Source: Setoptus koraiensis
Lineage: Eukaryota > Animalia > Arthropoda
Reading direction: 5' to 3'
Length of the DNA: 64,000 bases
NCBI GenBank assembly: GCA_048013815.1
Contig: CM106586.1
Coordinates: 23,498,001 to 23,562,000, forward strand
Shown here: one piece after another, positions 7,773-61,480 of the stretch
Layout of the letters: every line of letters starts with the position of its first letter
Numbering within the stretch: position 1 is the first letter of the stretch
Notes under the pieces: model-generated
The model's input: only the letters and a program-made list of their open reading frames with translations
Databases searched by the model: none
Told to the model about the DNA's origin: nothing
Position numbers and translations under genes: made by a program

Positions 7773-8296
7773 TCATTCATACAGTTGCTGCTGCATCTGA
7801 TGCAGATGATAGTGCTGCTGTTGTTGCATTTGGTGCAGATGATGATGCTGCTGTTGCTGTTGTTGTTGCTGCTGATGCTGCTGCTGACCACTATGATGAT
7901 GATGATGATGAGCCGCCGGGTGCAAGTGCTGACCACTGTGATGATGATGATGGGCAAGATGATGGAGACCATGTTGTGCGGCAACAACAGCGGCATTATG
8001 GTGCATTGCGGCAGCAAAATGATGATGATGATGCTGCTGGTGAGACAGTTGAGCCGCGGCCGCTGCAGCGGCGGCGGCCGCAGTTTGTTGAGGATTCAAT
8101 TTGCTCTCTTTCTTGAATTTCATTCGTCTGTTTTGGAACCAAATCTTGATTTGTCGCTCGCTCAAGGCGAGATTGTGAGCTATCTCGATGCGACGCCGGC
8201 GCGTCAAATATCTGTTGTAATGAAACTCTTTCTCCAATTCGAGCGTCTGGTGACGCGTATAGGTCTGGCGGGTGCGCTTCGATCCCGAGCAGGACT
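7773..8296 (-). CDS. ftz: fushi tarazu-like Hox gene, coding exon 2 (homeodomain and poly-A/H/Q tail)
   Basis: Homeodomain [60 protein letters not shown]. The KRTRQTY N-terminal arm is ftz-type. A CAG acceptor at 8297 preceded by a pyrimidine tract gives a phase-matched 169-nt intron. The spliced CDS is 1671 nt (556 aa). Its position immediately 3' of Antp fits ftz. Confidence 0.85.
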
Positions 8297-8465
8297 CTGG
8301 CGGGCGATCGGAAAACAAACACAGCGAACAAATACAAACATGTAACGTGTTAATTACTAGCTATGCAAATTAGGAGCCGATTTATGCGCAATATGATAAG
8401 ATTTTATTGCGCATTGTTGCGCGTTGTCGCTCAATGACAGTTTGTTTCTGACGGGTTCTACTTAC

Positions 8466-9612: not shown

Positions 9613-10494
9613 TGTTACGTAAGTCGATTTTCGAGCTTTTCCTTCTTTTAGCTGCCGTATGCTAACTATCCTCTGGTGCTTTTGCTCGTATAACTTTGGC
9701 TGTAATAGTTTTTGGCTCGTGACTATTACGTCGTCGTCTGTATCGCACTGGTCTGAATCGCCAGCCAATTTATTTGAGGTTGTTGGTAGGTTTGTTGTTG
9801 TCACTGAAACTGTTATATTGCGCCGAATGAAGCTTGCACAATGACGGCCTAGATGCGACTGAATGAGCGAGTATGTGTATGTGTGGTGTTCAGTGTTGGT
9901 GAGTCCAGAAGAATTCAACCAACCAACTAACAACCACAACACAACAGGCAACAGGCAGTATGATAATGGTCGCGCATGTGGCGCCAACTACCGACCGTTT
10001 CCCCAACCACATCAATTTTTTAACTACTCACTTTTTAGCTACTCGCCTTTTTTTTTTCGTTCTCTCTCTCTCTCCCTCTCGCATTTTTTCTTTTCCAGTT
10101 TTCCCAGTTTTCGCAGCGCAACGAATTTACATATTGAAAATCGCATTGATTGAAGAACCGCAGTAGGCACGAAAATTTGATGTAGCTGTCAAAGGAAAAC
10201 CATCAAAAGCTCGCAGCTCGGCTTGTCATAATTGTCACTCAGTTGTTTGGTCAGCAGCAACATCATTATCTGGTAACCATGAATAATGCATAATAATTTA
10301 ATCATTTTAATGAACGCTTGTTATAGGTCGGCGCTGTTTGTAATGTAAATGCTGTTTAAATGGTAATAACAGAGATAATAACATGCTACGTATAGGCGCT
10401 GTTACACAATCATCATTACAGGAGCTCCTTTCATTATGCAACAACCACCTCTGAATGTGATGTGACTTTGACAGACAGTCAAGTGTAAATGACA

Positions 10495-13049: not shown

Positions 13050-13641
13050 TCACACAGCAAAAGTGTATGTAGTTGAAGAAATATACAAATTAAATCAAAT
13101 TACTGTAATTAGATCACTGAATCAAGGTGTCTCACATAAGTGATACTATCACCTACAACCAATTAAATTATTGGTTTGCTACTGACTGACATTCGCAGTA
13201 GTGTCCACTGACAAGATTGTGTGTGAATCAATATATTCGACACGATATGATATATCAGCATAATATATTGATACTAGGGAATAAACAAGAGAGAGAGGGA
13301 ATATCTTGAAACTTGATTGGCGGATGTGAACATGGTCGCGCCATCTATAGGCGATCTGGTTAAACCGATCCGCAAACAATTGTATGGCGCAGTCTGGGCA
13401 ACGGACGGCAGCTAGTGGCACTTTCAAACAATTCTCACCGAACACACTGGTAGCTGCGTGGCCCTCGGCATTACGTAACAGAGCGCACATTTTCGGTGCA
13501 ACTTGCAATGAGCTATCACATGATCTCACCAGACACTTGATACATGTGTTTTTTCTACTCAAATTCACTACTTTAATTACACTATATCTCTTATTCACAT
13601 AACACAGGCTCATTTATTGGTGGCGATTGGTCCTCTCAAGT
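13050..13641. mobile_element. Dispersed repeat family 1, right-half copy
   Basis: Aligns to 29520..30121. Both copies end at TGGCGATTGRTCCTCTCAAGT. Confidence 0.65.
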
Positions 13642-13996
13642 GAGAGTGTGCGAAAGAATCATGAGTTTTTCTCAATGTCGTCACGATCAATAGACATTCT
13701 CTTGTTTTTTCGCTCTTTCTGCTGTTTGTAACTTGTTCTCGCAATGCAACTACTGGCACCGAGACAGAGAGCACCGATCAAATAACTGACCAACCATTAA
13801 CTAGCCACATCCTCTGATGAGAGAATCGCTCAGACGAATAGGCAAGAGTCACATACTAACCAACAATCAAGGAAGTATCACAATTGCCACCATTGCGATC
13901 CGGACAAATAATGATGACTAAAAATGTGTATGTATAAATGCGTATGAAATAAATTGGTTTGGCAATAACCAATGGAGAGTTTTTCTGGCGGTTGAG

Positions 13997-24491: not shown

Positions 24492-24979
24492 GGGATACGG
24501 TCATTTCATCGGCGAACGGATTTCATTTTCGTGCGCTTCTTCGACGCACAATCCAACGAACGGACACTTCGTAAAACGAGTATTTCGTGGTCGTACATTT
24601 CATACATATACGATCCGATGCTAGAGGTTCATCACTGTGAGAGAGGATGCGAATTTTTAGGTCTTATCATCAGTGTCGCCAATAATGACATCATGAAAGG
24701 TGTTTCGAAACAATGGCGACATAAAGCATCGCAATACACAATTTTCGAAGAAGTCGAGGCTAACTCTGGAAAAAAATATCGTTTCAATCGTGCAAACTAA
24801 GACAACATTGACCAATCTACTTTTGTTGACCTAGCCACATTGCAGAATGTCTCATGCGGGACAGATTGAGCGAGTTATCGAAGATATCACTCGATACCAG
24901 GGCGAATGGTCACGATATGCAGTCTGGTTCAGCTATGTAGCAACTATCATTTGAACGGCTTGATCAGCATAGACCATTT
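24492..24979. mobile_element. Dispersed repeat family 1, left-half copy
   Basis: Aligns to 29030..29501, with a small insertion near 24905. Confidence 0.65.
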
Positions 24980-25665: not shown

Positions 25666-26051
25666 GATTGCCAATCCGGCAAACTGATCACTGCAAGCCA
25701 ATAACTGGGGCCAACAGAATCGATTGTTCACCGATGTATTTCCAACTAAGTGAAAACCCCGAAAATTCGTATGCGGGTCATAAGTGAGTCATTTGATACA
25801 CACTTGTTCTCACCGGAATACCAAATCCAGGGGCTTTTTCTCGTTTCTACCGAAATTTATTTCTCTCGATACCAATAGGAATATGATGGAATTGAAAGAT
25901 TTTCCGCAATGGACAAGTGATTTTTAGAGACAGACAGTGTTGATAGATCTAAAAACACTTGCAATATGAATTATAGTATCGGACAGTTTAATTTTGGTGT
26001 CTGAGTGTACGGATTGGTTGCCAACTGTAGGTTTCGGTTGAACACTGTAAG
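25666..26051. mobile_element. Dispersed repeat family 2 copy (MITE or transposon relic)
   Basis: Reverse complement of 50881..51269 over about 390 bp. Shorter related units occur at about 25147..25200, 25268..25332 and 40920..40985. Confidence 0.62.
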
Positions 26052-26169
26052 CTTTATTAGGTCGACTGAACACTATATTTCATAGTCGCATGTGCAGATT
26101 TTTCACCTGTCTGCCGAAAAAAGTCAGATTTTCGCATGATTTCTACCGATTTAACAGCAAGAGTGACCA

Positions 26170-29029: not shown

Positions 29030-30121
29030 GGGATACTGCCGTTTCATAGGCGAACGGATTTCATTTTCGTGCGCTTCTTCGACGCACAATCCAACGAACG
29101 GACACTTCGTAAAACGAGTATTTCGTGGTCGTACATTTCATACACATACGATCCGATGCTAGAGGATCATCACTGTGAGAGAAGATGCGAATTTTTAGGT
29201 CTTATCATCAGTGTCGCCAATAATCACATCATAAAAGGTGTCTTGAAACAATGGCGACATAAAGCATCGCAATACACAATTTTCGAAGAATTCGGGGCTA
29301 ACTCTGGAAAAAAAATATCGTTTCAATCGTGCAAACTAAGACAACAATGACCAATCTACTTTTGTTGACCTAGCCACATTGCAGAATGTCTTATGCGAGA
29401 CAGATTGAGCGAGTTATCGAAGATATCACTCGATACCTGGACGAATCTGGTTCAGCTATGTACCAACTCTCACTTGAACGGCTGAATCAGCATAGACATT
29501 TACTCACATACTCGCATAGCCACACAGTAATAGTGTATGAAGTTCGAGAAACACACGAATTGAATCAAATTACTGTAATTAGATCACACACACATAAGTG
29601 TTTCTATTACCTACAACCAATTAAATTATTGGTTTGCTACCAACTAACATCCGCAGTAGTGTCCACTAAGACTAAGACTATGTGTGAATCAATATATTCG
29701 ATGCGATATGATATATCAGCATAATATGTGGCACATATTATATTGATACTAGGGAATAAACAAGAGAGAGAGAGAGGGAATATCTTGAAACTTGATTGGC
29801 GGATGCGAACATGGTCGCGCCATCTATGGGCGATCCCATCAAACCGATCCGCAAACAATTGTACAGCGCAGTCTAGGCAACGGACGGCAGCTAGTGGCAC
29901 TTTCAAACAATTCTCACCGAACACACTGGTAGCTGAGTGGTTTCTCCGCATTACGTAACAGAGCGCACATTTTCGATGTAACTTGCAATGAGCTATCACA
30001 TGATCTCATCGAACAATTGATACATGTGTTTTTTTTACTTAAATCCACTACTCTAATTACACTACATCTCTTATTCACATAACACAAGCTTATTTATTGG
30101 TGGCGATTGATCCTCTCAAGT
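29030..30121. mobile_element. Dispersed repeat family 1, longest copy (probable non-autonomous or decayed transposon; family unidentified)
   Basis: The left part matches 24492..24979 and the right part matches 13050..13641, both in direct orientation with high similarity. No TIR, LTR or TSD was recognised. Confidence 0.65.
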
Positions 30122-30606
30122 AGTGTTGTGGAACGATCGCTCGCTCCGAGCGAAAAATTTGCTCCAAGATCGCTCGCAAGTTGTGAGTTATGGAACCCGC
30201 AAAGTTTGATGAAATTGTCACATTAGACAACAAGTATACGTTCCATCGTGAATACTCTAAATTAAGTGTACCGTCGATGGGATGTACTTTCATCATGTAT
30301 ACTTTCTGTGAAGTTTAGATTGATGAGACGACCCAGGCCCCTTCCAGAGTCATTACTCAACCTAAGAAAAATTTCATATTGGGACAGATTCTGGTTTGCC
30401 TACCTACTCTCTATGGGCTGTAGACATTCTGGCACTTCATTGAGTTGCCTCAGATGCATTCGATTGTAGGCCACCATCAATCGGGTCATGTGCCCCAATA
30501 AAACTTGCCACCAACATTAGAATAGCGAATGAAAAAAGCCCCGGAGCGCCCTCTAGAGTTTGTTTTCGGTCACAATATCAACTTGAGATTCTCGAGCCCT
30601 CATCCC

Positions 30607-32947: not shown

Positions 32948-33700
<753 letters not shown>

Positions 33701-43499: not shown

Positions 43500-45080
43500 G
43501 TTTGCTGCTGCAACTTGTTTGCTGCTGCTGCTGCTGCACTGTATTTGTACTCTGGTCGGTGTGGCGCTGTTAACTCGCTGCGAGAAGGACACACCAGATA
43601 GCTGTGAGAGAGTTAGAAGAACAGTCGGATTCTTTTGCTTTTGGCTCGTTCGCAACTGCTTACATAACAACGCAGCAGCAGCGGCATCAGCAGCAACAAC
43701 AACAACAGCAACATCAGCAACCAACAACAACATCAACAGCAACGACGCAGCAACGACAATGACAACGCAGAACACATAAATTAAATTGAGTTTGCCAAAC
43801 TCACTGACAGCGCAACATACAAACTAGTCAGATAAATAAAATTGACAAAGCCGACAGCACACTGCAGAATTGGATGCCAAAAACTAACTGATGCTAGATG
43901 CTGCTCATGCAAGTCGCCATACAAACAGCACGGTGCTGGCGCGAAAAACTTTGCTGACCTATAAAAGTCACGAAAGAATTATTCCGATACAAAGTGACCC
44001 TATATGCGGCTATATGCGGCCAATCCGGCAGCGGCCTCAAGCGAGCCGGAATTTTCATTTCGCCTTGTCAAACAATATCTCTGCTCAATATCGTTATGAA
44101 ATATTGTCTGCTGACACAATGTCCCCTTTACAGGGGCAGCTTTTGCCCTTTTTTCCACTGTCCCACTGCAATCCAATTCCGATCGCCAGCCGATTTGCTG
44201 TTGCGCTGCTCGATAGGCTGTTAATGAGATGATAATTAATCGAAATGAATATTTAGTCGCAGTCGGTCGCTAAATAGATCAACTTGACACAAACAATGAT
44301 GCTGCTGCTGCTGCTGTGATGATTAACAATGAGCAATAAAATGTTGCACTGTTGCACCTCATACGCAACAAGGTTTGCCGGGCTAATCTCGTCGTTGATT
44401 GTTATTATTATTATTATTGTCTTTTTTATTATCTCCTTCTTCAAGATATAAGCCATAGACACATTAACAATAATGGCCGACACATAGTAACAAAATTATC
44501 TAGTTCCAAAAGCTAGCAGATACCATCATCACTGGTGTGCAGTTGACACGAGTCAAAATAAACAGAGTGAGCGATAAAAAAAGTCGTTATGATGATGTAT
44601 TGATGATTATCACTGGACATAAGTGACACCATAACAACAATAATGACGAAACATAAACAGGTAGTTATAACGGAACCACCAATTGAACTGAAAAAGGCTG
44701 AGGTGACAAGGCCGCAATATTGAACTTGACTTTGCCACTTTCGTTAGCTCTCAATAAATAATTTAATTGATTGTCTAATTGATAATAAACTAGTCAACTT
44801 GCATAACTGCATCTATTTACACACACACACACTCTAATTTTCATATAAAACCAATGCAAACCACTGTGCCAGCCAGAGCCTATCCTGTAGCCTCTGGCCA
44901 GAACAAACACTAAACACCTCATACTATTACTGTGGCCATAATGACGGCAATAATAATAGTAACGATTGTAATAATGAAAATAACGATCATCATTATTGCT
45001 TTTATAGTGACATTCATGTTGTTGTCATAAACACTCAACTCGCACTTATGAGATCATTGATCTTGATTCTTTTCAATTCG
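43500..45080 (-). repeat. Triplicated non-coding module, copy A (inverted; in Antp intron)
   Basis: Collinear reverse-complement matches to 53900..55340: 44920..45078 vs 53901..54059 (4 mismatches in 159), 43772..43900 vs about 55000..55137, AGTGACCCTATA at 43993, TGACCTATAA at 43955. Outer boundaries are approximate. Confidence 0.88.
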
Positions 45081-46608
45081 AACAAGCCAAGGTGGCCCTC
45101 TCGATAATGGCCCGTATATCACAAATCGACTGCCACTGTCACTACTGCTCACCGCTACCGGTGGCTACATTCTTGCAGACTCTATTTTAGGCAAATGACG
45201 TGGGCTCAAGTTCATCTTTTTCGCATCTTTTTCGGTTCTATTTCGGGTGTTTTTCGCATGTTTTTTGGATCTTTTCGCGCAACCAACGAGTGAATCGTCA
45301 CTCTGGCAGTCAGAGTCTGACTGGCATCATCCGCGAGAATTGCAGAAGCTCAAAAAAGCGCCACTCCAACCCTTCTAGACCCTACAACTTTTCGCCCAAC
45401 TCTTGTGAGCCTTTCATTCGAGCTCTCATCTCGATTGCACGCTTGATTTCCGTCCCAATAAAAGCTGAATGCAAGCATGAAAATATTTTCTTTCTGGCAG
45501 TTTGAAAATGATGCCAACATGGTGCCTTTTTCTACTCTATTGACTTTGAGCTGGCCATGGGCTGATGGGCTGCGTGCAAACAGGTAGTTTGTGTGAGGGT
45601 GCAGACTAGCCAGACGAATGATTAATCTGTCTGGCATGAGACTCATCTCATCTCAGCTCGGCTGTGTGAGTAACAAACAAACAAAGTTAAAGAGAGATCT
45701 TTGGCTCGTTTCGTGCACGCTCTTTCTCAGCCAAACTTTGGTTGTTGCAACATCTAGTCATATTGTTTTCTCTCTGAATATCTCTCTGAATATCTGAACT
45801 TTTTGTTAGAAATCGCAACAGCTGATCCGGCAAGACAAGACAAAACAACAGCATACATTGACACTTGAACTATAAACTCAGGAAATTGTCTGATGAAGTG
45901 GAGCCAATTTTCAATTGGCTCGTAATTGTTGCTTTGTCAACTTAGTCAATGGGAGCCAACAACATGCGACGACAACAACAGTAGACAGGCAGTCGGTTGA
46001 TTGATTATGCTCTCTCTCTCTCTCTGTGAGCCGACCAAGTTTGTTTGTTTGTTGGTTGTTGTTGTCGCTGTTGTTGCTGCTCTGATGACGAACCAACGCA
46101 TAGATTGCACGCAGCCAGACTGGCTCGCAAGCTAGAGCAACTTTCAATAAATAGCAACTACAACTGCATACGACAAGTCGCTGCACAACGACTGGATGTG
46201 CGGATAGGGATAAAAATAAAAATGTTTGTAAAAAATTTGCTCGCCGTCGTCGTCATGGTAGACAACTCTTTCCATTATAGGACAGATTGATACTCGTCTA
46301 CTCGTTGGTGGCGCTGTTGCGAAAACACAGCCAGTCAGCTGATGGCGCTGGCTTTCACCACTGGCAGCAGTCTGGCAACTAGGCAACTGGAAAGAACCGA
46401 CCGAAAGAATCGCTCGCCGCGCGACAGAAATGGAGCCATCTACACGCTTGGTTGCCTATAGCAACAACATGCCCGACGTTCTTACGCAACACAATGCTTG
46501 GCCTGATTGCAATGCTCTGGCGTGTTGACTGTGTGTGCTAGTTGCGTCTCTACGCAGGACGCGAGCGACACAACAAACTGAGAATGTTCCTCAAATTCGC
46601 AAAATCCG

Positions 46609-46720
46609 ACAAGTTCGGCAAATCCTACAAATTGGGCGGATTCTCAAGTTCGATAAGTTCGGCGAATTCTCGAGTTCGACAGATTCGGCGGATTCTCAAA
46701 TTCGACCGGTTCGACGGATT
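46609..46720. repeat. Degenerate 26-bp tandem repeat at the 5' end of the Antp intron
   Basis: Units GGCGRATTCTCRARTTCGA... start at 46635, 46661, 46687 and 46713. Confidence 0.8.
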
Positions 46721-46761: not shown

Positions 46762-48664
46762 CGAATTGGTTGCGCATCCACGGATAGCAGACTGGCGACA
46801 AATCGGACGCAACCGTCTGGCCGCTGCCAGTCGCAACAGCCGATCCTGCGGCGTTGATGGTCAAAATGTGCTGCTGTTGTTGCTGTTGTTGCTGTTGCGC
46901 CGGTTGCTGTTGGGCCGGCGCCGGTTGCATCTGCTGGTACTGGCCGTCGGCTGGTTGCTGTTGGTGTAGGTGACTCGGTTGTTGCTGTTGGTGGTGGTGA
47001 TGCGGCTGCTGCTGCTGTTGTTGTTGTTGTTGTTGCTGTTGGAGGTGATGCGAGTGCTGGCCATGATGATGTGGCTGATGCGCATGATGCAATTGATGAT
47101 GAGAGTAAATAGTTTGCTGCTGCTGCTGCTGATGATGATGCAGCTGAGCAGATTGAGCTTGCAATTCCGGCCTCGCCACTGACTGAGTGTGCAGTTGTTG
47201 CTGCTGTTGTTGTTGAGATTGTTGCTGCAACTGCATCTGCTGCAATTGTTGCTGCATCTGATGCTGCTGCTGTTGTTGTTGTTGTTGTTGATCGGCCTCT
47301 AGTGACACCGACGACGACGAGGGCGAATGTTGCGTAAGAGGATGCTGCTGCGGCTGCTGGTGACCTTGTAGGGGTGCCAGAGTTGGCGGCGTCGATATAG
47401 GTAGGATCCTCAAATTGGTGCCGGCGGCATGCAGATTGTCCGCTGCTGTGGCGCCAAAATTGCTGCTGACGCTGCTGTTATTAGACTTGTTGCCATTTGT
47501 GACAGGCTGCAAAGTTTGGGGCGACTGGTGATTTGGTGGCGTTCCGTTTGCTGGCGACGCGGCTATTGCGCCCATTGACGTGGGCACAACCGGCACGCCG
47601 GCAGCAGCAGTAGCAGCTATCGGCAACAATATAGGACTATCGGCACAGGTAGCCGGTTGTGCAATACCGTTCATGATGGGATGCTGATGATGATGCTGAA
47701 AGTGTTGCTCATAATGTTGGTGTTGCTGATGGTGATGTTGTTGCTGTTGTTGCAGGTGGTGGTGGTGGTGGTGAAGTTGTTGTTGTGGTTGATGCTGCTG
47801 ATTATGCAAATGCTGTTGTTGTTGTTGTTGTTGTTGTGAATGCTGTTGGTGGTGGTGCTGCTGAAAAGCGGCCGCATTCTGATGATGGTGATGGTGTTGT
47901 GCATGTTGCGCGTGGTGCTGGTGGTGAAGGTGATGATGGTGGTGAGCGTGTGGCATCAAAATCATGGCATGATGCTGCTGCTGTTGCTGTTGTTCAATAT
48001 TGGTTAGATCGGCTGAATTAAGCAAATGATGATGATGATTGTTGTCCGCTAGCGGTGATTGATTGCTGGCCAGCACTTGTTGTTGTTGCTGCTGCCGCTG
48101 CTGCTGAGTGAATTGCTCCTGATGTAAATCAAGCTGTTGGTGTTGGAGGTGATGAAGCTGCTGCTGCTGTTGTTGTTGGTGGTGATGGTGGTTGTGATGC
48201 TGCTGGTGCTGATGGTGTTGTTGATGGTGGTGCAATTGATGGGGTGCCTGGTGATGCTGCTGTTGTTGCAATTGTTGTTGCTGTTGTTGTTGTTGCTGAT
48301 GCTGAAAGTGTTGCTGATAAGTTTGCTGCTGCTGTTGTTGATGACTCTGAATTGTGTCCGGCGTGATGTTTGCCGTGAGTGTTGGCGTCGATTGAGGACT
48401 CACCGCGCTCGCCAGCATGGTGGCATCGCCCGCGCCCAAACTGACCGGCGACTGATGGTGATAATTGTGAGGTAGGCTCCCATTTGTGACTGGACTAGCC
48501 GAGTGATTGAAATGATGATGATGATTATTGTTGTAGTTGACCCTAGATTGAGTGGCCACAGTGGCCGCTGCGCTCGCTGCTGCCGCCGTCATTGCCGATT
48601 GTTCATTATGCGACACAACAGGATTGTATGGCAGATAATCGGTGGCGGCCTCAGTTATGTTCAT
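46762..48664 (-). CDS. Antp: Antennapedia, coding exon 1 (very Q/H-rich, ends in YPWM hexapeptide)
   Basis: The first in-frame ATG is at 48664 ([13 protein letters not shown]...). The exon ends ...VCYPWMRNQF-g with a GTGAGT donor at 46761. The intron is 13,131 nt and the spliced CDS is 2586 nt (861 aa). Confidence 0.88.
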
Positions 48665-48826
48665 CTTCTCGTCATTTTCGTCGTCCGAGATTTCGATCAA
48701 TTTAAATTACAATCGTCGATTACAATTATTGCGTGTTGTGTGTGTTTTGATTATTTCACTGCAATGTTTCAATTAGCTTCAATTTCGTCTCGTTCTTCAC
48801 GATTTTCATCCTCTTACCTAGCGTTG
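48073..48826 (-). repeat. Shared 5' block, Antp copy (leader plus first ~197 codons)
   Basis: Direct repeat of 57945..58696 at an offset of about 9.87 kb. Bases 48324..48556 are identical to 58196..58428. Confidence 0.95.
48759..48817 (-). other. Putative 59-nt 5'-leader intron of Antp
   Basis: AG|GTAAG donor at 48817, CAG acceptor at 48759 and a CTAAT branch-like motif. Donor and acceptor are conserved in the Ubx-like copy. Confidence 0.35.
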
Positions 48827-48997
48827 CGAGTGTGTGTGTGTGTGTTGTTGTTGTTGTGTGAAATTAATTATAAAATTAATTATAAGTTTTAGTTGATTTT
48901 AGCAAAGTTGCCCAAAGTGGCCCGATAAAAGACCTCTGTCTCTCTTTCTGTGCGACACAGAAAGAGCTTGAATTTGAGCTTCACACCCACAAATGAG

Positions 48998-49045
48998 CGT
49001 GTGTGTGTGTGTGTGTGCGTGTGTATGTGTGTGTGTGTGTGTGTC
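48998..49045. repeat. Interrupted (GT)n microsatellite upstream of Antp exon 1
   Basis: Direct inspection. Confidence 0.9.
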
Positions 49046-50580
49046 TGCGCTTGCGCAAACAAGCCACATGATGAGCTCGAATCGGTTCGGGCGCTTCGAA
49101 CTGGCACAATTGACAGAATTCGACGGCGACAACAATCATTGTTGGGCCAACGAGTCGTTGTCCCATTGCCGCATTGGCGAATTATCGCAATCGATCACCG
49201 TTTAATTGGGCCGGGCGAGCGAATCGGTTGAAATTTCTGCTTCTTTGCCGCTTTTGCAGCAAAAAAGTTCATAGAGGCATGCCCTTCATCGTGTTGTCGC
49301 GAATTTGTGTGCGGCTCCGGTGGAGAATTCGCGTTCGCTCACCCTCGTGCACGGGGCACGACCTTTTACGACTTAGCGAGAAACGGTTCGCCGGACAATC
49401 TAGCGGCGCTGGTTGTGTTAAAAAGTTGTCGCTGCGCGCTAAAAAGTGCTGGCGCTCCGTTTGTTTGGACAGTTATATTGGGCCAACATCAAACAGTTAG
49501 ATTGGCCAAACTGGTTGCACTGTCCAGTTGGCCGGACTGGTTAAACCGATTGAACCGATTCGCCGGCTTTTTTACACCGTCCGTCTATTGATTGTAAATG
49601 TGCCATGATTTTATGACCGCAATAAAGGGTGTCTAAAGCAGACCGCACATCTATAAAACACACTGTGCTGCTCGCTAGCACATATTCTTTCCGAAACGAT
49701 GATCAAATGAAATTCAGCACAACTAATCAGATGGACTGTGTTGAGGTCAAGAAAAGTTCCATTCGCTTGGCACAATTATTAATTTCGCGCTGCACATAGT
49801 CTTTCTCTCTGCACGCTATTTGTTCCAACTTGACCCGGCATCGCACTCACTGGTCACCAACACCAACTTGGTGTCACCAAGAGACATCTATGACCCGCCA
49901 ATGACACTAATGGCCGATATACTCTTGGCCGTTTACTATATAACCAATTGGGATCCTATTAGATGGAGAATAATTCACGAACAATTGTAAACAAGATACC
50001 GATTGAGAAGCAACAAGATGTTTAAGGCACCGGACAATACGCTCGATTTTCATAACAAGCAAATCGGTGAGTTTCATATAATCGTGAGATTAATTTATCC
50101 GGATCCCGTATTGGGGGTGGCTCTATTATATTCACCCACAATGTTAGAGATAAACCACACGGAACAATAGAGACTATCAATATTTATCTTATCAACACCA
50201 CATACTCACACCATGCCTACCCTCCTATTTGTCTCAAACAACAACATAATCATTGCCAGGTCCATCATCTAAATTTTCTTTTTCTGCCAAATTTTGTCCC
50301 TCGCAAAACTATCCATTTAAATTCAAAAATATAGCTGACATAGCGATGGGTCAGAGATGCAAAAACAAATCAAGATCGTCGGCCTACATCCTGACGTCCC
50401 CACTGGGGCATGTCTATACTAACGCCTGTCCCGATGGTTTGCATTGTGTTAGGTACGACTCAACACTCTGACCACTTAACTCAATGCACATCAAAATATG
50501 AATTAAAATGCTCATAACTGATTGCTCCTGGTCAAACATATAAACTTTCCACTACATATACATTCGAATATCATCAAACT

Positions 50581-50961
50581 ATGACTAACAATAACCCAAC
50601 ACAAACTCTGCTCTTCCTTCCCTCGTTTCTCTCCATCTTCTATGACATTGTAATTAATATTATTAGACTCTACGGCGATGCGGACTACGACAAGATTGAC
50701 TGGGATACAAAGGTTGACTTTATCAGAGCGTCAAGTCTAATGGAGAGCAATCCGCATGCAAAGCGTCTTAAAAAATGGTTACAAGCATATTTTGACAACG
50801 CGCCTCGTTGCGAAGAGATTGAACTAGATCTTTGTTGTTTAGATCTTTATGGAGACTTTAACTCAAATATTTGGAAAAATCTTATAGTGTTCAACCGAAG
50901 CCTGCAGTTGACAACCAATCCGCACACTCAGACACCAAAGTTAAACTGGCCGATATTATAA
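50581..50961 (+). pseudogene. Coding-like ORF fragment of unknown identity (126 aa) running into repeat family 2
   Basis: ATG start and balanced, non-repetitive composition (YGDADYDKIDWDTKVDFIRASSLMESNPHAKRLKKWLQAYF...), unlike the surrounding slippage ORFs. No family was recognised. Confidence 0.3.
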
Positions 50962-51269
50962 TTCATATTGCAAGTGTTTTTAGATCTACCAACACTATTT
51001 GTCTCTAAAAATCATTGTCCATGGCGGAAAATCTTTCAATTCCATTATATTGCTATTGGTATCGAGGGAAATAAATTTCGGTAGGAACGAGAAAAAGCTC
51101 CTGGATTTGGTATTTCGGTGGGAACAAGTGTGTCTCAAATGACTCACCTATGACTTGCTCGCATACGGATTTTCAGAGTTTTCACCTAGTTAGAAATACA
51201 TCGGCGAATAATCGATTCTGTTGGCCCTAGTTACTGGCTTGCTGTGATCAGTTTGCCGGATTGGCAATC
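50881..51269. mobile_element. Dispersed repeat family 2 copy, inverted relative to the 25.7-kb copy
   Basis: Reverse complement of 25666..26051. Confidence 0.62.
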
Positions 51270-51834
51270 CAGCCTAGCGGAGGACAGCGAAGAGTCGGAC
51301 AAATGAAACATCGTGCATCGAAGAAATTTATTCTCATGTTTTGTTGTATAGACTCTGGATAAGCGACACCATTGTAGAACAATGACTCTCACTAACCATC
51401 TACCTCATGTGTTTGTTACTGTATTATTGTTCGAGTATCTCGACAATCTGATAGCCGCATATCACTGCCAATAAACAAAAAGTATATTCCAGACAACGAC
51501 GAAACAGTCACTTCGATTATTCATTTCACTTCTTTATTTAGTGCTGTATCAATGGTGTAGATGTGATATTGGTTAGTTGTGTTTAGTTTAACCCTTGCCT
51601 CACCAAAATAATTTGACATTGAGAAATTGAGTGACTTTTTCTCGCTTCAAGAGTGGCCCTCCTAAGCGTTACGCATGTCAGAGTTGTCCTGTGACATAGA
51701 AGCCTCAATTGAACGATGTTTCTTTGCACGAATGGAATATCAACGACCGATCAATAACGGTTAGTTGGGTGCTCGCTTGCAGCGCCGTCTAACGTTGAGA
51801 AAACTCAACTTTTTTCGGAACAATCGCACGCTAC

Positions 51835-51852
51835 CACCTCTAGATGGCACCA
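51835..51852 (+). promoter_or_regulatory. CTCF-like motif (CCTCTAGATGGCACC)
   Basis: By-eye consensus match between the Antp 5' end and the Ubx-like 3' end. Confidence 0.35.
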
Positions 51853-53899
51853 TCATCAGCAATCACAATAATCTTTTATAATATGAATATTATTACATTG
51901 AGAGCTATCGAGTTATTCGATTGGCAAAATTAAAATCGACACGGCAAGTGCAAATAAGCTTGCACTTGTCATAGCTTGATTTGCAAACAATATGGCACAC
52001 ACACACACGTAACACACGAACAACTGGTAACAAACAAACAAATAAGCAAGCAAACAAGTGTAATCCATGCCAGCAAGACTGTGGCTTAAAACAGACAATT
52101 GTGAGAGTAAAAAGTGCAATTGCGCAACAGCAAATCACAATGATGATAAAATGAAATTTTGAGTATGAATAACCTATAATTATTGTTATTACTATAGTGT
52201 GTGTGTGCCATTTGCAAGTGGCAGAGCGACCGATGGCATTATGATTATGGTTAGCATTGGCGTGGCCACGTCTAGCCAATCGAAGGCCCGTCGTAAAGAA
52301 TGCCAGCCAACGACGAGCGCCAGATGAGATTGAGTTAGCGAGATACGAACAACGATTCACAACAACCGACAAACAACTCGGCTCACAAACTCGGCTGGCT
52401 CTATGCGAACGCACAATCAATCAACAGAATGGCGATTTGTGGTGCCAGATTACCTGTCGGTTCGTTGTTGTTGTTGTTGTTGTTGTCGCTGCCGTTTTGT
52501 TGTTGTTGCTGCTCACCTGTTGGGCTGTTCAGTTATTGGCAATTGTTCTGGCTGCGATGAGTCACCCAAGCAAGCAAAACGAAGCGAACAAGCAAAGAGA
52601 GAAATATCTTTCCTCGCAAGTGGTATAATGTTCGATGGGATAGCTGGCCAGTTGCCTTGAGCGCCACACTTCGATTCGAGCGAGCTCGACAACGCAGCCG
52701 AGCGACGACGAGCCAACAATTTGACTGAATTGATAATAAAATTATTAACAATTATTGTTGTTGCCTGCAAACTAACTCGTCGTCGTCATACAAGTCGATA
52801 GTTCAAGTTCACACACTCATATAGTGTGTTTACGTTTAAAAAGAAAATTTGAAATAGTTGAAAAAGTTGTGAGTAGCTCAGAGAAAAGTTTAATAAATGA
52901 TATATAGAGATACGACGAGTAACATGAATAATATACGAAGTACATTATTTAAGGATAAGCCGCTTGTTGCCGCTTGTTAAATACACGAACAGCTATCTAA
53001 ACTAAACTATCTAGCCCGCCAGCTCGAGCCGAGAATCTTTGCGAGAGAGAAGGCGAATATTAGTCGTTTGTAACAGCTAGGTGAGGTAGCCCGGGCAGAG
53101 TTACAAGTTGAAATTAATTATGTATGTCTGGCTAGTTTTTGTACGCATACAAACTACTTGTTCGCACGCAGCTTACAATTTCATGAGGAGCGAACAATCA
53201 AAAGAGTAAGAGTGGCACTAATATCTGTGATAGCCAGCCACTAACAACATGATCTGCCAAGTGGCTCCTGACAGCTCAATAAATGTTAGCTGCAAACTAT
53301 TTCAAACGCGAAAAAAGAAAATCTCTCCAATTGGATTGAATTAGAATTAGGATGGCCAACAAAGAATTGAGCCGGGTTGATCTGATCTGAGTGTCAAAGA
53401 ACTCTTCACAGGGCTCGAAATATTTTGGATGATGCAAGTGGCGAGTGAAAATGGACTGTGTGCGAAAAAACGACGACTCAAATGTATTTCACAGACCACA
53501 GAGATGAATAGATGTCATGTCGGACGAAACTGAATAGAGTTGGTCGCAAATCAAGTTTGGATAGGCAGATTTTTTGAATAGATATAGATATAGATATCTA
53601 CTATATAATTCCTCGGAGCACAAGATGCTGCTCCGTTGTGCAGGTTGATTGCGCGACAATTACCGATTGACGAACCAACGTTTCGATCCACATTAATCCA
53701 ATCTATAATGTACAGAACTATCCATAGTTGCGAGGGCTGATTTGTTATTGTTCCGATGCGAATATGAGCTTGTTGGCGATTCCGTTATAACGGAATGGCC
53801 ACTTGATTACGATTGTATCAACTGGTGGCATCAACAGTGACAATGACAGATTACGGATGCGAAGAAAGTGAGTGAACCTTGTGTCACCTTGTCTCATTT

Positions 53900-55340
53900 C
53901 AATTGAAAATAATCAAGATCAATGATCTCATAAGTGCGAGTTGAGTGTTTATGACATCAACATGAATGTCACTATAAAAGCAATAATGATGATCGTTATT
54001 TTCATTATTACAATCGTTACTATTATTATTGCCATCATTATGGCCACAGTAATAGGATGTGCATGGCGTTAATTTGGCCAGCGGCTATATGCGCCAGTGC
54101 TCTGCTCTCTGTTATTATTCTCTATTATTGGTGAGTATGGAAATGAGTGGGCAGACGACAGCTAGACAGCTTTGTTGACTTTCATTTCGACACGGCGACA
54201 GACAATCAATTAACTAATCAGCGATTAATTTATTGTTACTACTTGTTAATACTTGTTAGCTCAATACTGTGGCGCAACCGAGTCAATTCAATTGATTCAA
54301 CTACCTGCTCACGCTCATCATTATCATTGTTTTTGTTGTCTCACCTCTGTCGGCAGTACATCATCGTAATGCCTTTTTTATCACCCACTCTCTTCGTTTC
54401 AAACGAATAACTATTAACTGCAAAACTGCATTGATGAGACTCTCACTCGAACTGGATAATTTTGTTACAAAGTGTCGGCCATTATTGTTAATGTCAATCG
54501 ATTGTGTTCTGCACCAGATAATAAATGATAATAACAAACAACGTGACTGAGTTATCATGATGTCGTTGTTATGGCGCCATCATTGCAACATTTGTCGCTC
54601 GAACGTATATCGTATGGGTCGATCCAATATTTTGTCCAATAAACATTGGACCGAATGTCCGACTCGATCGGATTTTATTTCGTTATTTAAACAGCCAATC
54701 ATCGATGAGGCAAATCTCAGAACATAGCCGTCTGACTGCAGTCAGCCAATCAAATGGCGAGACGCGAGACGAGGTGACGCTTTCGAACGCGCAGTGAGCG
54801 AACAAAGTTGGCATGCATTCAGTCTCGCTCCCGTTCCATCGAGGCCTGTGGCATACGTTGACCAGACCTCATATAGGGTCACTTTGTTGTGTCGGACGAC
54901 TCGTGACTGTTATAGGTCACTAATGTTGTTCAATTGTTATTATACTCCCTGTGTATGTGCGTGTGACTTGCATCAGCATCTCGCGTTTACCATCGGCTAG
55001 CATCAGCTAGTTTTTGGCATCCAATTTGAGTTAGTCTGTTGGTCTGTCTGAGTTGAGTTGAGTTGAAATTTATTTATCTCACTAGTTTGTATGCTGCGCT
55101 GTCAGTGAGTTTGCTAAACTCAATTTAATTTATGTGCCCAGAGTAGCCGCTGTTGTTGTCGTTGTTGCTGCTGTTGCTGCTGTCGTTGCTGTTGTTGTTG
55201 CTGCTGTTGTTGGCGTCGTCGTTGTTATGTAAGCAGCGAACGAAGCAAGAGAGCAAATAATCGCACTTCTTCGCTCGGATCTTCGCTCGGCTCTCACACA
55301 GTCAGCGCCAGCCATACATTGGGCAAACAAGTTGCCTTGT
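53900..55340 (+). repeat. Triplicated non-coding module, copy B (between Antp and Ubx-like gene)
   Basis: Inverted match to copy A and direct match to copy C. Blocks: AT-rich core 53901..54059, TATAGGGTCACT at 54872, TTATAGGTCA at 54910, TGTCAGTGAGT at 55100, TAATTTATGTGC ending about 55137, then a GTT/GCT tract. Confidence 0.88.
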
Positions 55341-55506
55341 AATTCTTTTTCGCTCGCATTGGTCCGCTTCGAAGCATCACGATCGAACACACACGCCACT
55401 CGAGCCACCTTCTTGTGGTATTCGCGAAGCTCTTTTGGAGCCAGCACCAATTCCAACCGATCGCTCCATCATCACCGAATCGATCCATCCACGATGACAG
55501 CGGCGT

Positions 55507-55521
55507 CCTGTAGGGGGCGCT
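55507..55521 (+). promoter_or_regulatory. CTCF-like motif (CCTGTAGGGGGCGCT)
   Basis: By-eye consensus match just beyond module copy B. Confidence 0.35.
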
Positions 55522-57006
55522 CACTGACGACCAAATCGACCGCCAGGTGCGTGAAAGTGAGTGTGCACATTGACAACTGGGCGCAATGAGACCTCACCTC
55601 AGCACAAAATCAAATGATGTCCTCCGGCTGTAAAGACCAATAAAAAACAATTTACGATCACACTCACACACAATGAGCGATCAGTCAGTGTGTAAAACGG
55701 CCTTCGAGTGTCATTGGCGGTTTTACAAACAGCTGACTGGACTGACCGACTGACTGACCGTTATATCGGTATATATCAAATCGATTATAACTGATAACTG
55801 GCGGACAACAGCTCACCTATGGATAATGAGACATATGTGAAGTGCTGGGCAGCGAGCGCTGATTCGCAAAGATATGAGCCAACATTTCTCGAGTGACATT
55901 CTCGTGTAGAGCCCGTTTGAAAATGCACTGATGGCAAGCCAGCCATCGGTCTGCTCTTTTCCGGTTTCTCTAACAAAGTTACAATGTAGCTTGTTTCAGG
56001 GATATTTGCCACTGGCATTGGATGCTAGATATTAGATTGCCAGATCTATATCAAATGATCGATATTGTGGCCCGATTCCGCTTGCCCGCCCACCGTCGAC
56101 ATGGTCAATATAGGCGCAACCATCGGCGCGCACGTTCGACTGGCCGTTGCAATTGATGCATCAAAACTAAATTGATATATTGATATGTGCAATGTGTGTG
56201 CTCATCCGTGATGGTCTTTTGTGATTGGCGACTTTGAGAGGCACAAGATGCAAGTTGATCAATCGAAGTGAGCGCAAGTCGAAAGCGCCCAGCGAATCGG
56301 CGCCTATAACGACTAACTCCGCCAAGTTGAATGAACTCGATCCAATCGAAAGATTGCCCAGTCCAATGCCCGACGACTCGACTCGATCGAGCAGTAGGGC
56401 ATCCAAGAAGCGCATCAGTCTATCCGAAGAAAAAAACGTTCTTTTTTTCTCGCAATGAATGCTCAAGAAAAAAAATTCTCAAAAGAGGATTCCTCAAAAA
56501 AGACTTCCCGAAAGAAGAAAAATGATAACTGAAAACTGGATGAGTGAGTGATTTTATGAATCCATCTGTGACGCATAACTGAATTGTTTACAACTGAATT
56601 CACGAAATACGTTTTTCTTCACCGCAAATCGCGGCAGTTTTGCCAGAGAAAGCAGAAAATAATTCCATTCACGATGCCTCGAATGCCGCGGCTAACGAGG
56701 CGTTCATTTGTTTATTTGTTGTTGTGACGACTCAATGACTCATTCATATGGACGATAAGTTGAACAGTTGTATACATTGTAGACATGTGATCGAACATGA
56801 AAATCACTCGAACAAGTTTTTCACGAGAACGTGTCAACGAAAAACTGTTTAGTCGAAAAAAAATTTTCTGAAAAATTGCTCACACGCAGAAAGACAGGTA
56901 AAAACAGAAAGAGAATTCTGAAATATTGATGCAGAGATAGTGCCGAATAAAATGACAGAATCACGAGCCCAAATGTGGAATAGGATGCCGTGCAGTTGAC
57001 TCACCA

Positions 57007-58536
57007 TTATCGCTGCTTGTGGTTGCTGTGATGATGCTGAGACGATCTAACCAAGGTGCCGTGTTGTTGCTGTTGCGAAGACGCCGACGACGACGATGTT
57101 GTCCTGTTGGCATTTGCCGACGACGACGTTGTTGTGGTTGGCGCTGTTGTGGTCGTTGACGACGATGATTGATTTGTTGTTCTCTCTTGTTCGTTTAGAT
57201 CTTTCACAGTTTGATCTTCTTTCTTTTTTTTCATGCGCCGATTCTGGAACCAAATCTTAATTTGGCGTTCGCTCAATGTGAGCGTATGCGCCAATTCAAT
57301 CCTTCTTCTTCTTGTCAAATATGCGTTCATTCTGAACTCTTTCTCTAACTCGAGCGTCTGAAAACGGGTATACGTTTGCCTGCCGCGCCTCCTAACGGTG
57401 GCACCAGTCAAATAGGGAGGTAATGTTCCATTGATCATCCACGGATAAGCCGATTGATAGCAAGCTGCGTGATGCAATGCAGCGGCTTGTTGCGCAACAC
57501 TAGAATGATGCTGTTGGGCCTCTTGATATTGTCTGGCGACGGCCACGTTGACAGCGTTGGCGACATTAATGGAGCTGGGCGAATTGACGGCAACGGCGGC
57601 CGCCGCGGCCGCACTGACCGCCGCCGCCGACTGTTGCTGTTGGTGGTGCGACTGATGATTATAGGCGCCAACATTGTGCTGATGATGCGACTGCTGCATG
57701 GAGGTTGTATGGTGTTGCTGATTGCTTCTCTGGTGGTGCGGCTGGTGGTGGTGGTTTTGTTGCTGCTGGTGCTGTTGTTGATGTTGGTGGTGTTGCTGTG
57801 ACAATGCCACTGATTGACCGGCCACCGTTGAGCCGACCTCTGACGATAGATTGTTGTTGTGGCTGTGGTTGTTGTTGTTGTTGTTGTGGAGATGTTGCTG
57901 CTGCTGCAGTGTCGTGGGTGACAAATTCGCAGACGATTTGATATGCACTTGTTGTTGCTGCTGCTGAGTGAATTGCTCTTGATGTAAATCAAGCTGTTGG
58001 TGTTGGAGGTGATGAAGCTGCTGATGCTGCTGTTGCTGTTGTTGGTGGTGCTGGTGGTTGTGATGCTGCTGGTGCTGGTGCTGATGGTGTTGTTGGTGGT
58101 GGTGCAATTGATGGGGTGCTTGGTGATGCTGCTGTTGTTGCAATTGTTGTTGCTGTTGTTGTTGTTGCTGATGTTGAAAGTGTTGCTGATAAGTGTGCTG
58201 CTGCTGTTGTTGATGACTCTGAATTGTGTCCGGCGTGATGTTTGCCGTGAGTGTTGGCGTCGATTGAGGACTCACCGCGCTCGCCAGCATGGTGGCATCG
58301 CCCGCGCCCAAACTGACCGGCGACTGATGGTGATAATTGTGAGGTAGGCTCCCATTTGTGACTGGACTAGCCGAGTGATTGAAATGATGATGATGATTAT
58401 TGTTGTAGTTGACCCTAGATTGAGTGGCTACGGTAGCCGCTGCGCTTGCTGCTGCCACAGTCATTGCCGATTGTTCATTATGCGACACAACAGGATTGTA
58501 TGGTAGATAATCGGTGGCGGCCTCAGTTATGTTCAT
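57007..58536 (-). CDS. Ubx: Divergent Ultrabithorax-like (UbdA-class) Hox gene; intronless CDS whose N-terminal ~195 aa are shared with Antp
   Basis: ATG at 58536. The protein has YPWM, a 14-aa linker, [59 protein letters not shown] and a UbdA-like peptide [12 protein letters not shown] (Ubx IQAIKELNEQEK; abd-A LRAVKEINEQAR). It lies immediately 5' of Antp and lacks the abd-A TDWM/PFER linker motifs. F at homeodomain position 11 is abd-A-like, so the Ubx label is less certain than the UbdA class. Confidence 0.72.
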
Positions 58537-58696
58537 CTTCTCGTCATCTTCGTCGTCTGAGTTTTCAATCAATTTTAATTACAATCGACGATTACAATTA
58601 TTGTGTGTTCTGTGTGTTTTGATTATTTCACTGCGATTTCGAATGGCTTTAATTTCGTCTCGGTCTTTACGATTTTCATCCTCTTACCTTGCGTTG
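57945..58696 (-). repeat. Shared 5' block, Ubx-like copy (leader plus first ~195 codons)
   Basis: Direct repeat of 48073..48826. There is one amino-acid difference (A/V) in the first 108 residues. Other differences are synonymous changes and poly-Q/H length changes. Confidence 0.95.
58631..58687 (-). other. Putative 57-nt 5'-leader intron of the Ubx-like gene
   Basis: AG|GTAAG donor at 58687 and CAG acceptor at 58631, paralogous to the Antp leader. The branch-like motif is not conserved. Confidence 0.3.
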
Positions 58697-59804
58697 TGTG
58701 TGCGTTTGCATAAAAGTAAACATAAGATATTAACAATCCGACGATTTCTGGCAAGCTGTTAGCTAACATAACAACAGTGGATGTGAATTTGAGCTCTCAC
58801 TTTGACTGTAACATTTTCAAACTGACTTGTTTGCGTGACTCATCACTTGGACTTGACTTTACTTCGTTGCGAGTTGAGTCAAGTCGGGCAACAAAACTTG
58901 CCATCCATTGCGTCTGCACATGCGCAAAAGGCCGTGCCCGCTGTGGCTCTGGTTGCTGGTTTACACAGTGACATCATTCCTGGCACTCTGGTGGTCAGAT
59001 CCCGCAGATAAACCAGCACAACCGATACTAGAATCGAGCACCCATTTCAGAGATGTTTTTCGACATATTTTCCGAAAAAAAAACGATAATAATTTCGATA
59101 TTTATTTTCCGAAATAATGGAGCTTATTTTTTCAGTGTCCTCTCTCGTTCTCTAGTTATTGAGTGGTTTTTCGAGATTTTCTTTACTTTCTTTCCATTTC
59201 GAACAGAATTTCGTCAGGACGTAAATAATGAAATCATTCTGCTCGAATGTCGCCAGTCGGTGGAATGCTCACTCCGCTGTCTTGAGATGCACTCAATCAG
59301 CCAATAATGATCCGCGAAGTGGACGAAATATTATAGAAAATTGAGAGAATCTTGTATATTTCGCTGTTTCCATGACGAAATTTTCTAAATCCTGACTCCA
59401 CAGAATGGTGGTGTGAACGCGTACACGACCACACATGCTACCTGCAAATTGCGATGATGAATAAATTGCGAGAAATCGAACGGCAATATAATTTGAATTA
59501 TCATGTTGTCTGGTGGCTACTGGTGGCTAATCGAGGCCAATTGATGACCGAGTTAGTGCAAATTTTACATTGAGCAGCATCTGAAACGCTACACTGTAAA
59601 TGAGCAGCTTCAGTATATATCTATTAGTTGATAATGGTGCTGGGATCGACATTAAATCATTTTATTAGTATCACACGGTGCGTTATTTTTTCAATTTTAA
59701 CGCAATGCAGTAGCTGCATCGTCCACTGCTACAGGTGAGATGTGGAGGTTGCATATGCAGGTTATGGCAAGGATGACAGGTAAGAAGACTGCTGAAAATC
59801 AGTA

Positions 59805-61480
59805 GCATCAAGATCAATGATCTCATAAGAAGTTGATTGCATGACAACATCAATGTCACCATAAAAGTAATAATGATCATCGTTGTTTCCATTATTACAA
59901 TCGTTATCATTATTATTGCCACTCTCATAGTGAGACTCTCGCAAGGAGTGTGCGAGTTTGTTTTGCCCACAGGCTACACAGCTATTTTGTACTGTAACAG
60001 TTGGTTGGCATTGCAAATTGCTCGAAAATGAAAAGGCAAACATTATACAAACATTAGGTTACGTAACTCTCTCTCTGCCTACCTTTATGTCTCTGTGTTT
60101 GTGTGTCTAATTTATCAATTTATCAATTAGACACACAAACACAGAGACAATCTGAATTAACTGATCGAGAGTCATATCTGAGTCGTTTATATTTAAATGA
60201 ACTACCTGTTTTTCAGAGCTACTCACACTGTTTATTGCCATTACGATTATTATTGATGGCACATGCTTAGTGGTTATGACTGTTTGCACTTTTATTCCTT
60301 TCATTTGAGCCTGGCTTCATTATTATTACCTCTATTTAATTATCAATTGATGATACACTTAGCTTGTTAGCAGAACTTATAAGCGCGCACCGATAGTAAC
60401 AATAACCTATTTTTATTATTACCTGAATGGCCCGATATTTACAATGTTCATTCGCAGACAGTTTATGTTCATCTTAAACGAGACCATAAAAAAGATAATA
60501 GTACAATAATGAGCACCATTGCAGTAACCTCTGCGTCCAAATTGTTGACTGTTAGTTAATCTGTAAGGTGTCATGGAGATGACACAAACTAACCACTGCC
60601 AATTGAAATCAATTGACTAAACTCTTATTGAGTGTTTGTTGCAAAATAACAATATACATATATATATATAAAAATAACCAACTAAAGCGACCGAAACGAG
60701 ACTGGACCAAGATATCGGCTCATTCGATCCATTGAACTTGATGCCGCAACCGGAAATGGCAAACTCTACATATCTCTGCATGATGGCTATCACCATATCA
60801 ACATCATATCTAGCGAAACCACTTTAATGGCCAGTTAACAATTGAACGATTTATATTCTATATTTTTCTAGTTTTCTAGTTCTAGTTAATGCTTTTTCTT
60901 CTCATAATTATTATTCTTTGTTCTGTTTCGAGACGCTGTCCATGTAAAACTGACACTCCGAAGATTAGAATATTACATTTCGGCCCGAACTAAACAGATT
61001 TGGAGCAGGCTGTGGCCGATTGTGTTGATCGTATGAGCCGAAGGCAACAATTCATACATTTGATAGATGGCGAAAGACAATGAACAAATATAGGGTCACT
61101 TGCGTGTGAGCCATTCCAGCAACTGTTATAGGTCAGCTAGTTTGATGTTGCTGTTGCTGCTGCTGTTGTTGCTGTTGCTGTTGCTGTCGTTGTTGCTGTT
61201 GCCAGTGGTGCGATTACCACCACTAGCAGCCAGTTTTCGGCAGTCATTTTGAGCGAGACATTGAGTGGATCGGCGCTTCGATTTTCTTTCCATTTTGCTG
61301 GCTTGTTTGCTGGTGTCAGTGAGTCCGAGCCGAGCCTAATTTATGTGCTGGTGTTGGCGTTGGCGTTGCCCTGGCCGTTGTTGTTGTTGTTGCCGGTGTC
61401 GTTGCTGTTTCTGCCGCTGCCGCTGCCGTTGCTGTTGTTGGCGTGATTGTTGCGAGCAACGAATCGGAAAATAATGGAAA
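59805..61480 (+). repeat. Triplicated non-coding module, copy C (upstream of Ubx-like gene; most diverged)
   Basis: The same blocks occur in the same order: core-like 59808..59930, TATAGGGTCACT at 61089, TTATAGGTCA at 61126, TGTCAGTGAGT at 61314, TAATTTATGTGC at 61337. Boundaries are approximate. Confidence 0.78.

Follow-up and report, generated by a model that had tools for sequence, protein, structure and literature searches.

A near-identical N-terminal module shared by Antp and a Ubx-type Hox gene in the eriophyoid mite Setoptus koraiensis

We investigated a stretch of 64,000 nucleotides (nt) from the genome of the eriophyoid mite Setoptus koraiensis (assembly GCA_048013815.1, contig CM106586.1, positions 23,498,001 to 23,562,000 of the forward strand; hereafter the window), in which two Hox genes of different classes, Antp (gene A) and a Ubx-type gene (gene B), begin with nearly the same leader and the same 197 codons (hereafter the module). 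The window carries three Hox genes, all on the minus strand and in the transcription order B, Antp and a ftz-like gene; B lies 8.3 kb upstream of Antp on the same strand. This matches the canonical collinear order of Ubx, Antp and ftz. The features on which the argument rests are listed below, with positions counted from the first letter of the window.

32948..33630, minus strand: Antp homeobox exon, with the homeodomain at 33455-33625 (Pfam PF00046, E 5e-23), extending to the stop codon
33631..46761, minus strand: Antp intron of 13,131 nt between hexapeptide and homeodomain, GT..AG, phase 1, donor g46761 t46760, acceptor a33632 g33631
46762..48664, minus strand: Antp coding exon 1, an open reading frame (ORF) ending ...CYPWMRNQF G, followed by a gtgagt donor
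48073..48838, minus strand: module copy A, with the leader at 48665-48838, the ATG at 48664 and 197 codons at 48074-48664
48324..48556, minus strand: identical core of 233 nt in copy A (codons 37-113), equal to 58196-58428
57007..58536, minus strand: intronless Ubx-type Hox gene B, one ORF of 509 codons plus stop
57945..58708, minus strand: module copy B, with the leader at 58537-58708, the ATG at 58536 and 197 codons at 57946-58536; read contigs bridge both of its ends
58196..58428, minus strand: identical core of 233 nt in copy B, equal to 48324-48556

Copy A of the module runs in frame into the Antp gene, with 634 codons plus one base up to CYPWMRNQF. At the splice, CYPWMRNQF G and gtgagt on the donor side are joined by gtgcag and AG AGG AAA CGG on the acceptor side to read in frame F-E-R-K-R-G-R-Q; this YPWMRNQF-ERKRGRQ junction is of the Antp type and falls at the conserved position of the intron. 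The intron length and its GT..AG borders bear out an earlier note, made from the letters of this DNA alone, which had described an Antp homeodomain spliced over 13 kb. By eye, 57 of the 60 homeodomain residues are those of arthropod Antp, and the best match in a phmmer search of the PDB was Antp (120 bits, vs 109 for Ubx). In a maximum-likelihood tree of the homeodomain and its flank, which held no ftz or Scr references, A fell in the Antp clade with support of 100/100. About 40 nt downstream of the exon-1 donor, at 46627-46720, lie three tandem copies of a 26-nt unit (79-81% identity).

Gene B is a single ORF (58536-57007), as the earlier note had it in calling the gene with the UbdA-type homeodomain unspliced. 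Its order is module, His/Gln-rich region, SAYPWM, a 14-residue linker, the homeodomain (57220-57390) and a UbdA-like tail, which we compared with KLKKEIQAIKELNEQE[KR]; Pfam placed one homeodomain in each of A and B. The best PDB match of B was Ubx (112 bits, vs 101 for Antp), and in the tree B fell in the Ubx clade, apart from abd-A, with support of 100/99, its nearest neighbour by path being Ubx of Fragariocoptes setiger. The homeodomain phylogeny, one of the checks proposed for this locus, thus grouped A with Antp and B with Ubx apart from abd-A, and together with the PDB matches it upholds the claim that the two genes come from different Hox classes. B shares derived residues with F. setiger Ubx (VRRRGRQ, EFR, LSERQ and, upstream, VARQY), and 50-52 of its 60 homeodomain residues are identical to those of other Ubx proteins. 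One residue is abd-A-like (TRFQ); judging from the tree, the PDB match and the derived residues, which this single residue would not outweigh, we read B as Ubx-type. Furthermore, the F. setiger gene (P0040, GCA_019968535.1, contig JAIFTH010001634) resembles B in being intronless from hexapeptide to homeodomain and in its His/Gln-rich upstream sequence, but it starts at base 39 of its contig, where the contig end truncates the N-terminus, so that the comparison with B covers only the part downstream of the module region.

The two module copies form a direct repeat on the minus strand (48073-48838 vs 57945-58708), 94% identical at a spacing of 9870-9872 nt, which was recovered by repeat search, MAFFT and blastn. 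The blastn alignment of 48838-48097 against 58708-57957 was 93.8% identical over 754 columns, and in a self-blast of the window the match was 94.2% over 742 nt. The 3' end of the module, ...CAACAACAAGTGC, at 48073 in A and 57945 in B, is reached when a 12-nt indel in the Gln repeat is allowed. Each copy (~765 nt) contains a leader of 172-174 nt, the ATG and 197 codons, encoding a lineage-specific N-terminal arm and then a His/Gln-rich stretch; the 5' end adjoins a (CA)n repeat, and the 3' end lies within a CAG/CAA (polyGln) repeat. Outside the module, the window self-blast revealed no collinear similarity between the two loci, only short dispersed repeats common to both, and tblastn found no third copy within the 64-kb window. 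Direct repeats over part of the leader and the N-terminal codons had been described before; their 3' limits were exact, whereas at the 5' side the repeat reaches 48838 and 58708, about 12 nt further than claimed. The perfectly identical run of 233 bp was located where the list above places it, and the single amino-acid change reported near the N-terminus is A27V, the only one in the first 113 residues.

Past ...QQQV, BLASTP detects no similarity between the two proteins (E > 3), in agreement with their description as unrelated there. The start of the A protein lacks a canonical SSYF-type motif, and, as had been noted for both genes, A and B begin with the same non-SSYF module sequence. Because an in-frame TAA lies 15 codons 5' of both ATGs, a coding exon further upstream could not contribute a canonical start in this frame. 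The module is in frame with the gene's own hexapeptide and homeodomain in both A and B, and since A and B share only the homeodomain outside the tract, one of the two proteins would be chimeric.

Between the copies there are 36 substitution sites, of which about 21 lie in the leader and about 15 in the aligned coding part, and several indels. The leader is 12% diverged and has one 2-nt indel. In the 189 aligned codons, we counted 13 synonymous and 3 replacement differences and two in-frame 6-nt indels. By the Nei-Gojobori method, synonymous divergence (dS) was 0.131 and replacement divergence (dN) 0.0066; this ratio of 0.05 (Fisher p 7.8e-8) is the outcome of the dN/dS check proposed for the block. 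If either lineage were neutral, replacement and synonymous differences would be expected at about 2:1, and the 3:13 seen therefore indicates that both lineages were constrained as protein, which shows that purifying selection acts on both module copies.

The coding differences are unevenly placed along the module. There is 1 in codons 1-25, six fall within 31 nt (48557-48587, codons 26-36), none in the next 233 nt, and nine substitutions plus indels in the His/Gln part, so that local divergence ranges from 0% to ~19%. When differences were placed at random, a run of at least 233 nt arose in 0.7% of trials (p 0.007); in addition, 0 of the 13 synonymous changes lie in the core, which holds 47% of the synonymous sites (p 0.0003). 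Judging from this pattern, the latest conversion tract is probably the 233-nt core, superimposed on an older copy.

We investigated the copies in independent reads, using Logan read contigs (k = 31) of runs X1, X3 and X4, from three studies holding the B locus. X3 record 11 (57599-58009) spans the 3' junction of the module at B (57957) with no mismatch, and the 5' junction (58708) is crossed into B-specific DNA by X3 record 14, X4 record 20 and X1 record 3. In each of the three runs, a second contig has the exact A-type letters at the differing sites of 58548-58663 and ends at the module boundary, and in X1, a DNA run, the A-type and B-type leader contigs are of equal depth (105.8 of 211.8). 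With contigs of three independent studies bridging both B junctions and carrying both leader versions, misassembly, against which the earlier note had advised a check, is excluded for practical purposes. One 984-nt contig of X1 joins 59001 to 57047 in inverted orientation, with both ends and the far end on GATC sites (58998, 57044, 56789); we rejected an inversion at 59001/57047 in favor of a proximity-ligation junction, and since this inverted joint runs from GATC to GATC, X1 is a proximity-ligation (Hi-C type) library.

The reads also hint at more than two copies. All three runs have a further version of the module inside the core, with 58228 G>C and a 3-nt deletion at 58205; X3 record 12 shows eight differences in 124 nt within the core, and 58309 C>T occurs in X3 and X4. 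In X1, the depth of this further core version is 120, additional to 244 for A and B, and a third locus seems a better account of it than an allele. One X4 contig departs from B at 58519 into a different AT-rich leader and reads ATG AAG ACA GAG AAC GCC ACC GAT, an MKTENATDY start. The diverged version also has a 3-nt deletion near 58496-58500 (B coordinates). Moreover, the unitig 57245-57628, which spans B from YPWM to the homeodomain, has about twice the depth of its flanks in X1, X3 and X4, and a near-identical second copy of the homeobox region, or 3' half, of B probably exists. Together, the read contigs suggest a tandem duplicate of B with a more diverged copy of the module. In run X7, labelled as another organism, only a 224-nt piece of the B homeobox was found (57155-57378, depth 3) with one change, 57373 C>A; this change is also present in X3, and the piece is likely trace mite DNA of another strain in the X7 sample.

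Depths in X4 were strongly uneven: the A-type leader reached 640, whereas the B-type leader and the sequence upstream of it stood at 27 and the flanks of B at 27-34. The B-type letters at 58429-58459 reached about 240, and the unique coding unitigs of B reached 89-335, which is 3-10 times both flanks. The same pieces (B coding sequence and leaders) are flat in X1. The X4 pattern suggests an RNA component on a DNA background, with strong transcription of the Antp leader and weaker transcription of the whole B ORF, including the module, from a short B leader.

The Antp and Ubx paralogy groups separated before arthropods arose. The similarity of the module copies is too high for ancient paralogy, including at synonymous sites and in the untranslated leader, and a copy or ectopic conversion of the 5' end is hence the only reasonable reading. 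We conclude that the module shared by Antp and the Ubx-type gene is a real, selected and natural "domain swap" between Hox genes. As to its origin, we give a probability of roughly three in four to repeated ectopic conversion, or short-tract copying, of the 5' module between the neighbouring Hox genes, with both products selected. One gene would have received the module of the other through non-allelic (ectopic) gene conversion or short template-switch repair, with anchors in two repeats, (CA)n on the 5' side of the leader and CAG/CAA within the coding region, which are the only sequences that the two loci would have shared beforehand. The copies would then have been re-homogenised at least once more, leaving the 233-nt identical core. 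As is typical of conversion, the tract is discrete (742-765 nt) with unrelated flanks, and its divergence is uneven beyond chance. The earlier note had proposed that one gene recently acquired the 5' end of the other; copying or conversion is supported, but not as one very recent event, given the mosaic divergence. Two sources were consulted for the donor direction and favored neither gene: CAA/CAG and CAT/CAC usage and the GC content of third codon positions are alike in the module and in the remainder of both A and B, and in F. setiger the Ubx contig begins 38 nt before the partial coding sequence and holds no Antp exon downstream.

Several points weigh against repeated conversion as the origin. 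Gene conversion normally needs prior homology, and at the tract ends nothing but simple repeats can be seen, so that the founding event is itself a deduction. An exhaustive phmmer search with the 113 non-repetitive residues against 1.8 billion representative proteins returned no orthologue of the module in other species, only a spurious repetitive Ig-like protein, and therefore all evidence on the age, donor and conservation of the module comes from this one genome; a scan of metagenome contigs for exact 28-mers of the module gave nothing either. Synonymous CAA/CAG and CAT/CAC changes inside repeats may reflect slippage and inflate dS. As for the reads, Logan contigs pop bubbles and variants are not phased across shared 31-mers, no library type is recorded for X4, and expression is poorly gauged by contig depth.

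Unequal crossing-over offers a different route to the same arrangement. In the Lepore and anti-Lepore globin fusions, it duplicates or deletes flanking DNA along with part of a gene. The mite locus resembles these fusions in being a chimera of neighbouring same-strand paralogues with a break in local similarity, but here homology is confined to 765 nt. An anti-Lepore event would consist of recombination in polyGln between Antp and a parental Ubx gene, yielding B as a tandem extra gene with the 5' half of Antp and the 3' half of Ubx, after which conversion kept the modules alike. The 3' end of the module inside a polyGln repeat fits this scheme, as does the probable second copy of the B 3' half seen as doubled unitig depth in three runs. 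However, the whole Antp upstream region should then be duplicated, and homology ends 172-174 nt 5' of the ATG; the upstream flanks of A and B are not collinear and have only dispersed repeats of 125-175 nt in common. The leader is so little diverged that intergenic DNA of the same age would be readily detectable by blastn, yet none is collinear. We consider this route unlikely, though it is the most serious of the competing explanations.

Less probable still is that one old copy event was followed by no conversion and that the core was held identical by constraint at the nucleotide level, such as RNA structure, an exonic regulatory element or an antisense transcript. The core is indeed non-repetitive coding sequence with zero synonymous changes, and its flanks differ. 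Against this, no Rfam match was found anywhere in the window, the drop from six differences in 31 nt to none over 233 nt is abrupt in the way typical of conversion-tract edges, and the further version in the reads differs inside the core (58228, 58309 and the 3-nt deletion at 58205), so that the core tolerates change. It is very improbable that one copy is untranslated, with B decaying or the Antp module serving only as a 5' untranslated region and the similarity kept passively by conversion. The B homeodomain is fast-evolving, to judge from its 50-52 residues shared with other Ubx, and in X4 the contig of the B leader does not rise above background (27, vs 640 for the A-type leader), but the ORFs are open for 509 and 634 codons, with the module running straight through to YPWM, indels are multiples of three, and the replacement-to-synonymous count of 3:13 departs from the ~2:1 of a neutral lineage. 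F. setiger Ubx, moreover, is equally divergent and equally intronless, which makes these traits the norm in the lineage. The chance that the assembly placed a single module twice is negligible: it is favored only by the general risk that comes with repeats, and is opposed by the 36 substitution sites and several indels between the copies, by the contigs of three studies across both B junctions and by the separate A-type leader contig of equal depth in the DNA run.

Known cases of tandem paralogues that underwent partial gene conversion are mammalian TLR1/TLR6 (PMC2077338), the ETCHbox genes (PMC8208926) and annelid Dlx homeobox duplicates (PMC3199776). The repeated conversion that we favor for the mite genes resembles these cases in that a discrete, near-identical tract lies in diverged neighbours, with mosaic divergence and the copies in cis a few kb apart. 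It differs in that those pairs are recent duplicates of the same gene and homologous over their full length, whereas here two Hox paralogy groups are involved and only the homeodomain is common outside the tract. We class the finding as a known process, partial gene conversion, here acting across Hox paralogy groups. Hybrid Hox proteins are familiar from Drosophila, both as laboratory domain-swap proteins of Antp, Ubx and Scr and as the Ubx-abd-A hybrid gene that arose from a deletion in the bithorax complex. In these too, one Hox protein provides the N-terminal half and a second one the half with hexapeptide and homeodomain; however, they are laboratory constructs or lethal or visible mutations, while the arrangement in the mite is natural and fixed, with both parental-type genes intact and both copies selected. 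In the full-text literature, we found no precedent for a naturally shared N-terminus between Antp and Ubx, and the eriophyoid genome papers do not mention it.

The N-terminal effector regions of different Hox paralogy groups are believed to have stayed distinct for > 500 million years, and the contribution of the N-terminus to Hox specificity has been tested mostly with artificial chimeras. The Antp and Ubx proteins of the mite would have the same 197 N-terminal residues and the same context of translation start, including upstream open reading frames (uORFs). Functional differences between A and B would then lie in the region from module to hexapeptide, the linker, the homeodomain, the C-terminal tail and separate cis-regulation, and the pair would offer a direct experiment of nature on the share of Hox identity that resides outside the N-terminus. 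It would also mean that ectopic conversion can cross the boundaries of paralogy groups within a Hox cluster. Eriophyoid mites, with two leg pairs and a worm-like trunk, have among the most reduced body plans of arthropods, which makes changes in Antp and Ubx developmentally relevant. On the practical side, orthology calls and probes for A and B would go astray if based on N-terminal sequence.

A wider possibility, which we hold only tentatively, is that the module is a cassette kept homogeneous by conversion among at least three Hox genes, namely Antp, B and the further copy seen only in reads; that copy may belong to a second Ubx-like gene next to B. If so, the N-terminal effector of central Hox proteins would evolve as one unit, decoupled from homeodomain identity, in an animal that lost two leg pairs and most of its trunk patterning. 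A different generalization, that the module is an N-terminal motif common to all central Hox genes, was dropped: a comparison of the module with the ftz-like gene of the window, involving MEVANDYSQFAPINTIV, gave BLASTP E > 4.

Within the module, both leaders carry two uORFs, listed here for copy A.

48756..48809, minus strand: uORF 1, MKIVKNETKLKLIETLQ and stop, 17-18 codons; the counterpart in B is at 58623-58679
48661..48675, minus strand: uORF 2, MTRR and stop, 4 codons, the stop overlapping the main ATG (ATGA); an identical uORF in B is at 58533-58547

The retention of both uORFs in both leaders may reflect shared translational control. A candidate leader intron of 59 nt, AG|GTAAGAGG...TTGCAG| in both copies, was left unsupported, as the only relevant contig (X4 record 21, from the library of unrecorded type) retains it.

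The third Hox gene of the window occupies 9987-8458 and 8318-7773 on the minus strand. Its exon 1 ends ...ITYAWMKKSHV, with the hexapeptide YAWM rather than YPWM, and after a short intron its homeodomain ends ...MKFKKE. The PDB search tied Antp and ftz at 106 bits each, and Dfd-like residues (TRHQ, HYNRY) are present. From its sequence features, the gene at 7773-9987 is probably ftz.

The dispersed repeats include an element of 125-175 nt, resembling a miniature inverted-repeat transposable element and 84-95% identical between copies, at 44920-45094 (in the Antp intron), 53885-54059 (between Antp and B) and 59804-59921 (upstream of B). The copy at 44920-45094 is inverted relative to the other two, and none is collinear with the module. 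Further dispersed pairs, 86-92% identical, lie in a Hox region far looser in build than the compactness ascribed to the genome would suggest: 13051-13654 and 29521-30133, 24492-24979 and 29030-29501, and 25666-26055 and 50877-51269. Some of these pairs hold an ORF containing ...FHRRTDFIFVRFFDAQSNERTLRKTSISWSYISY... and look like transposon remnants.

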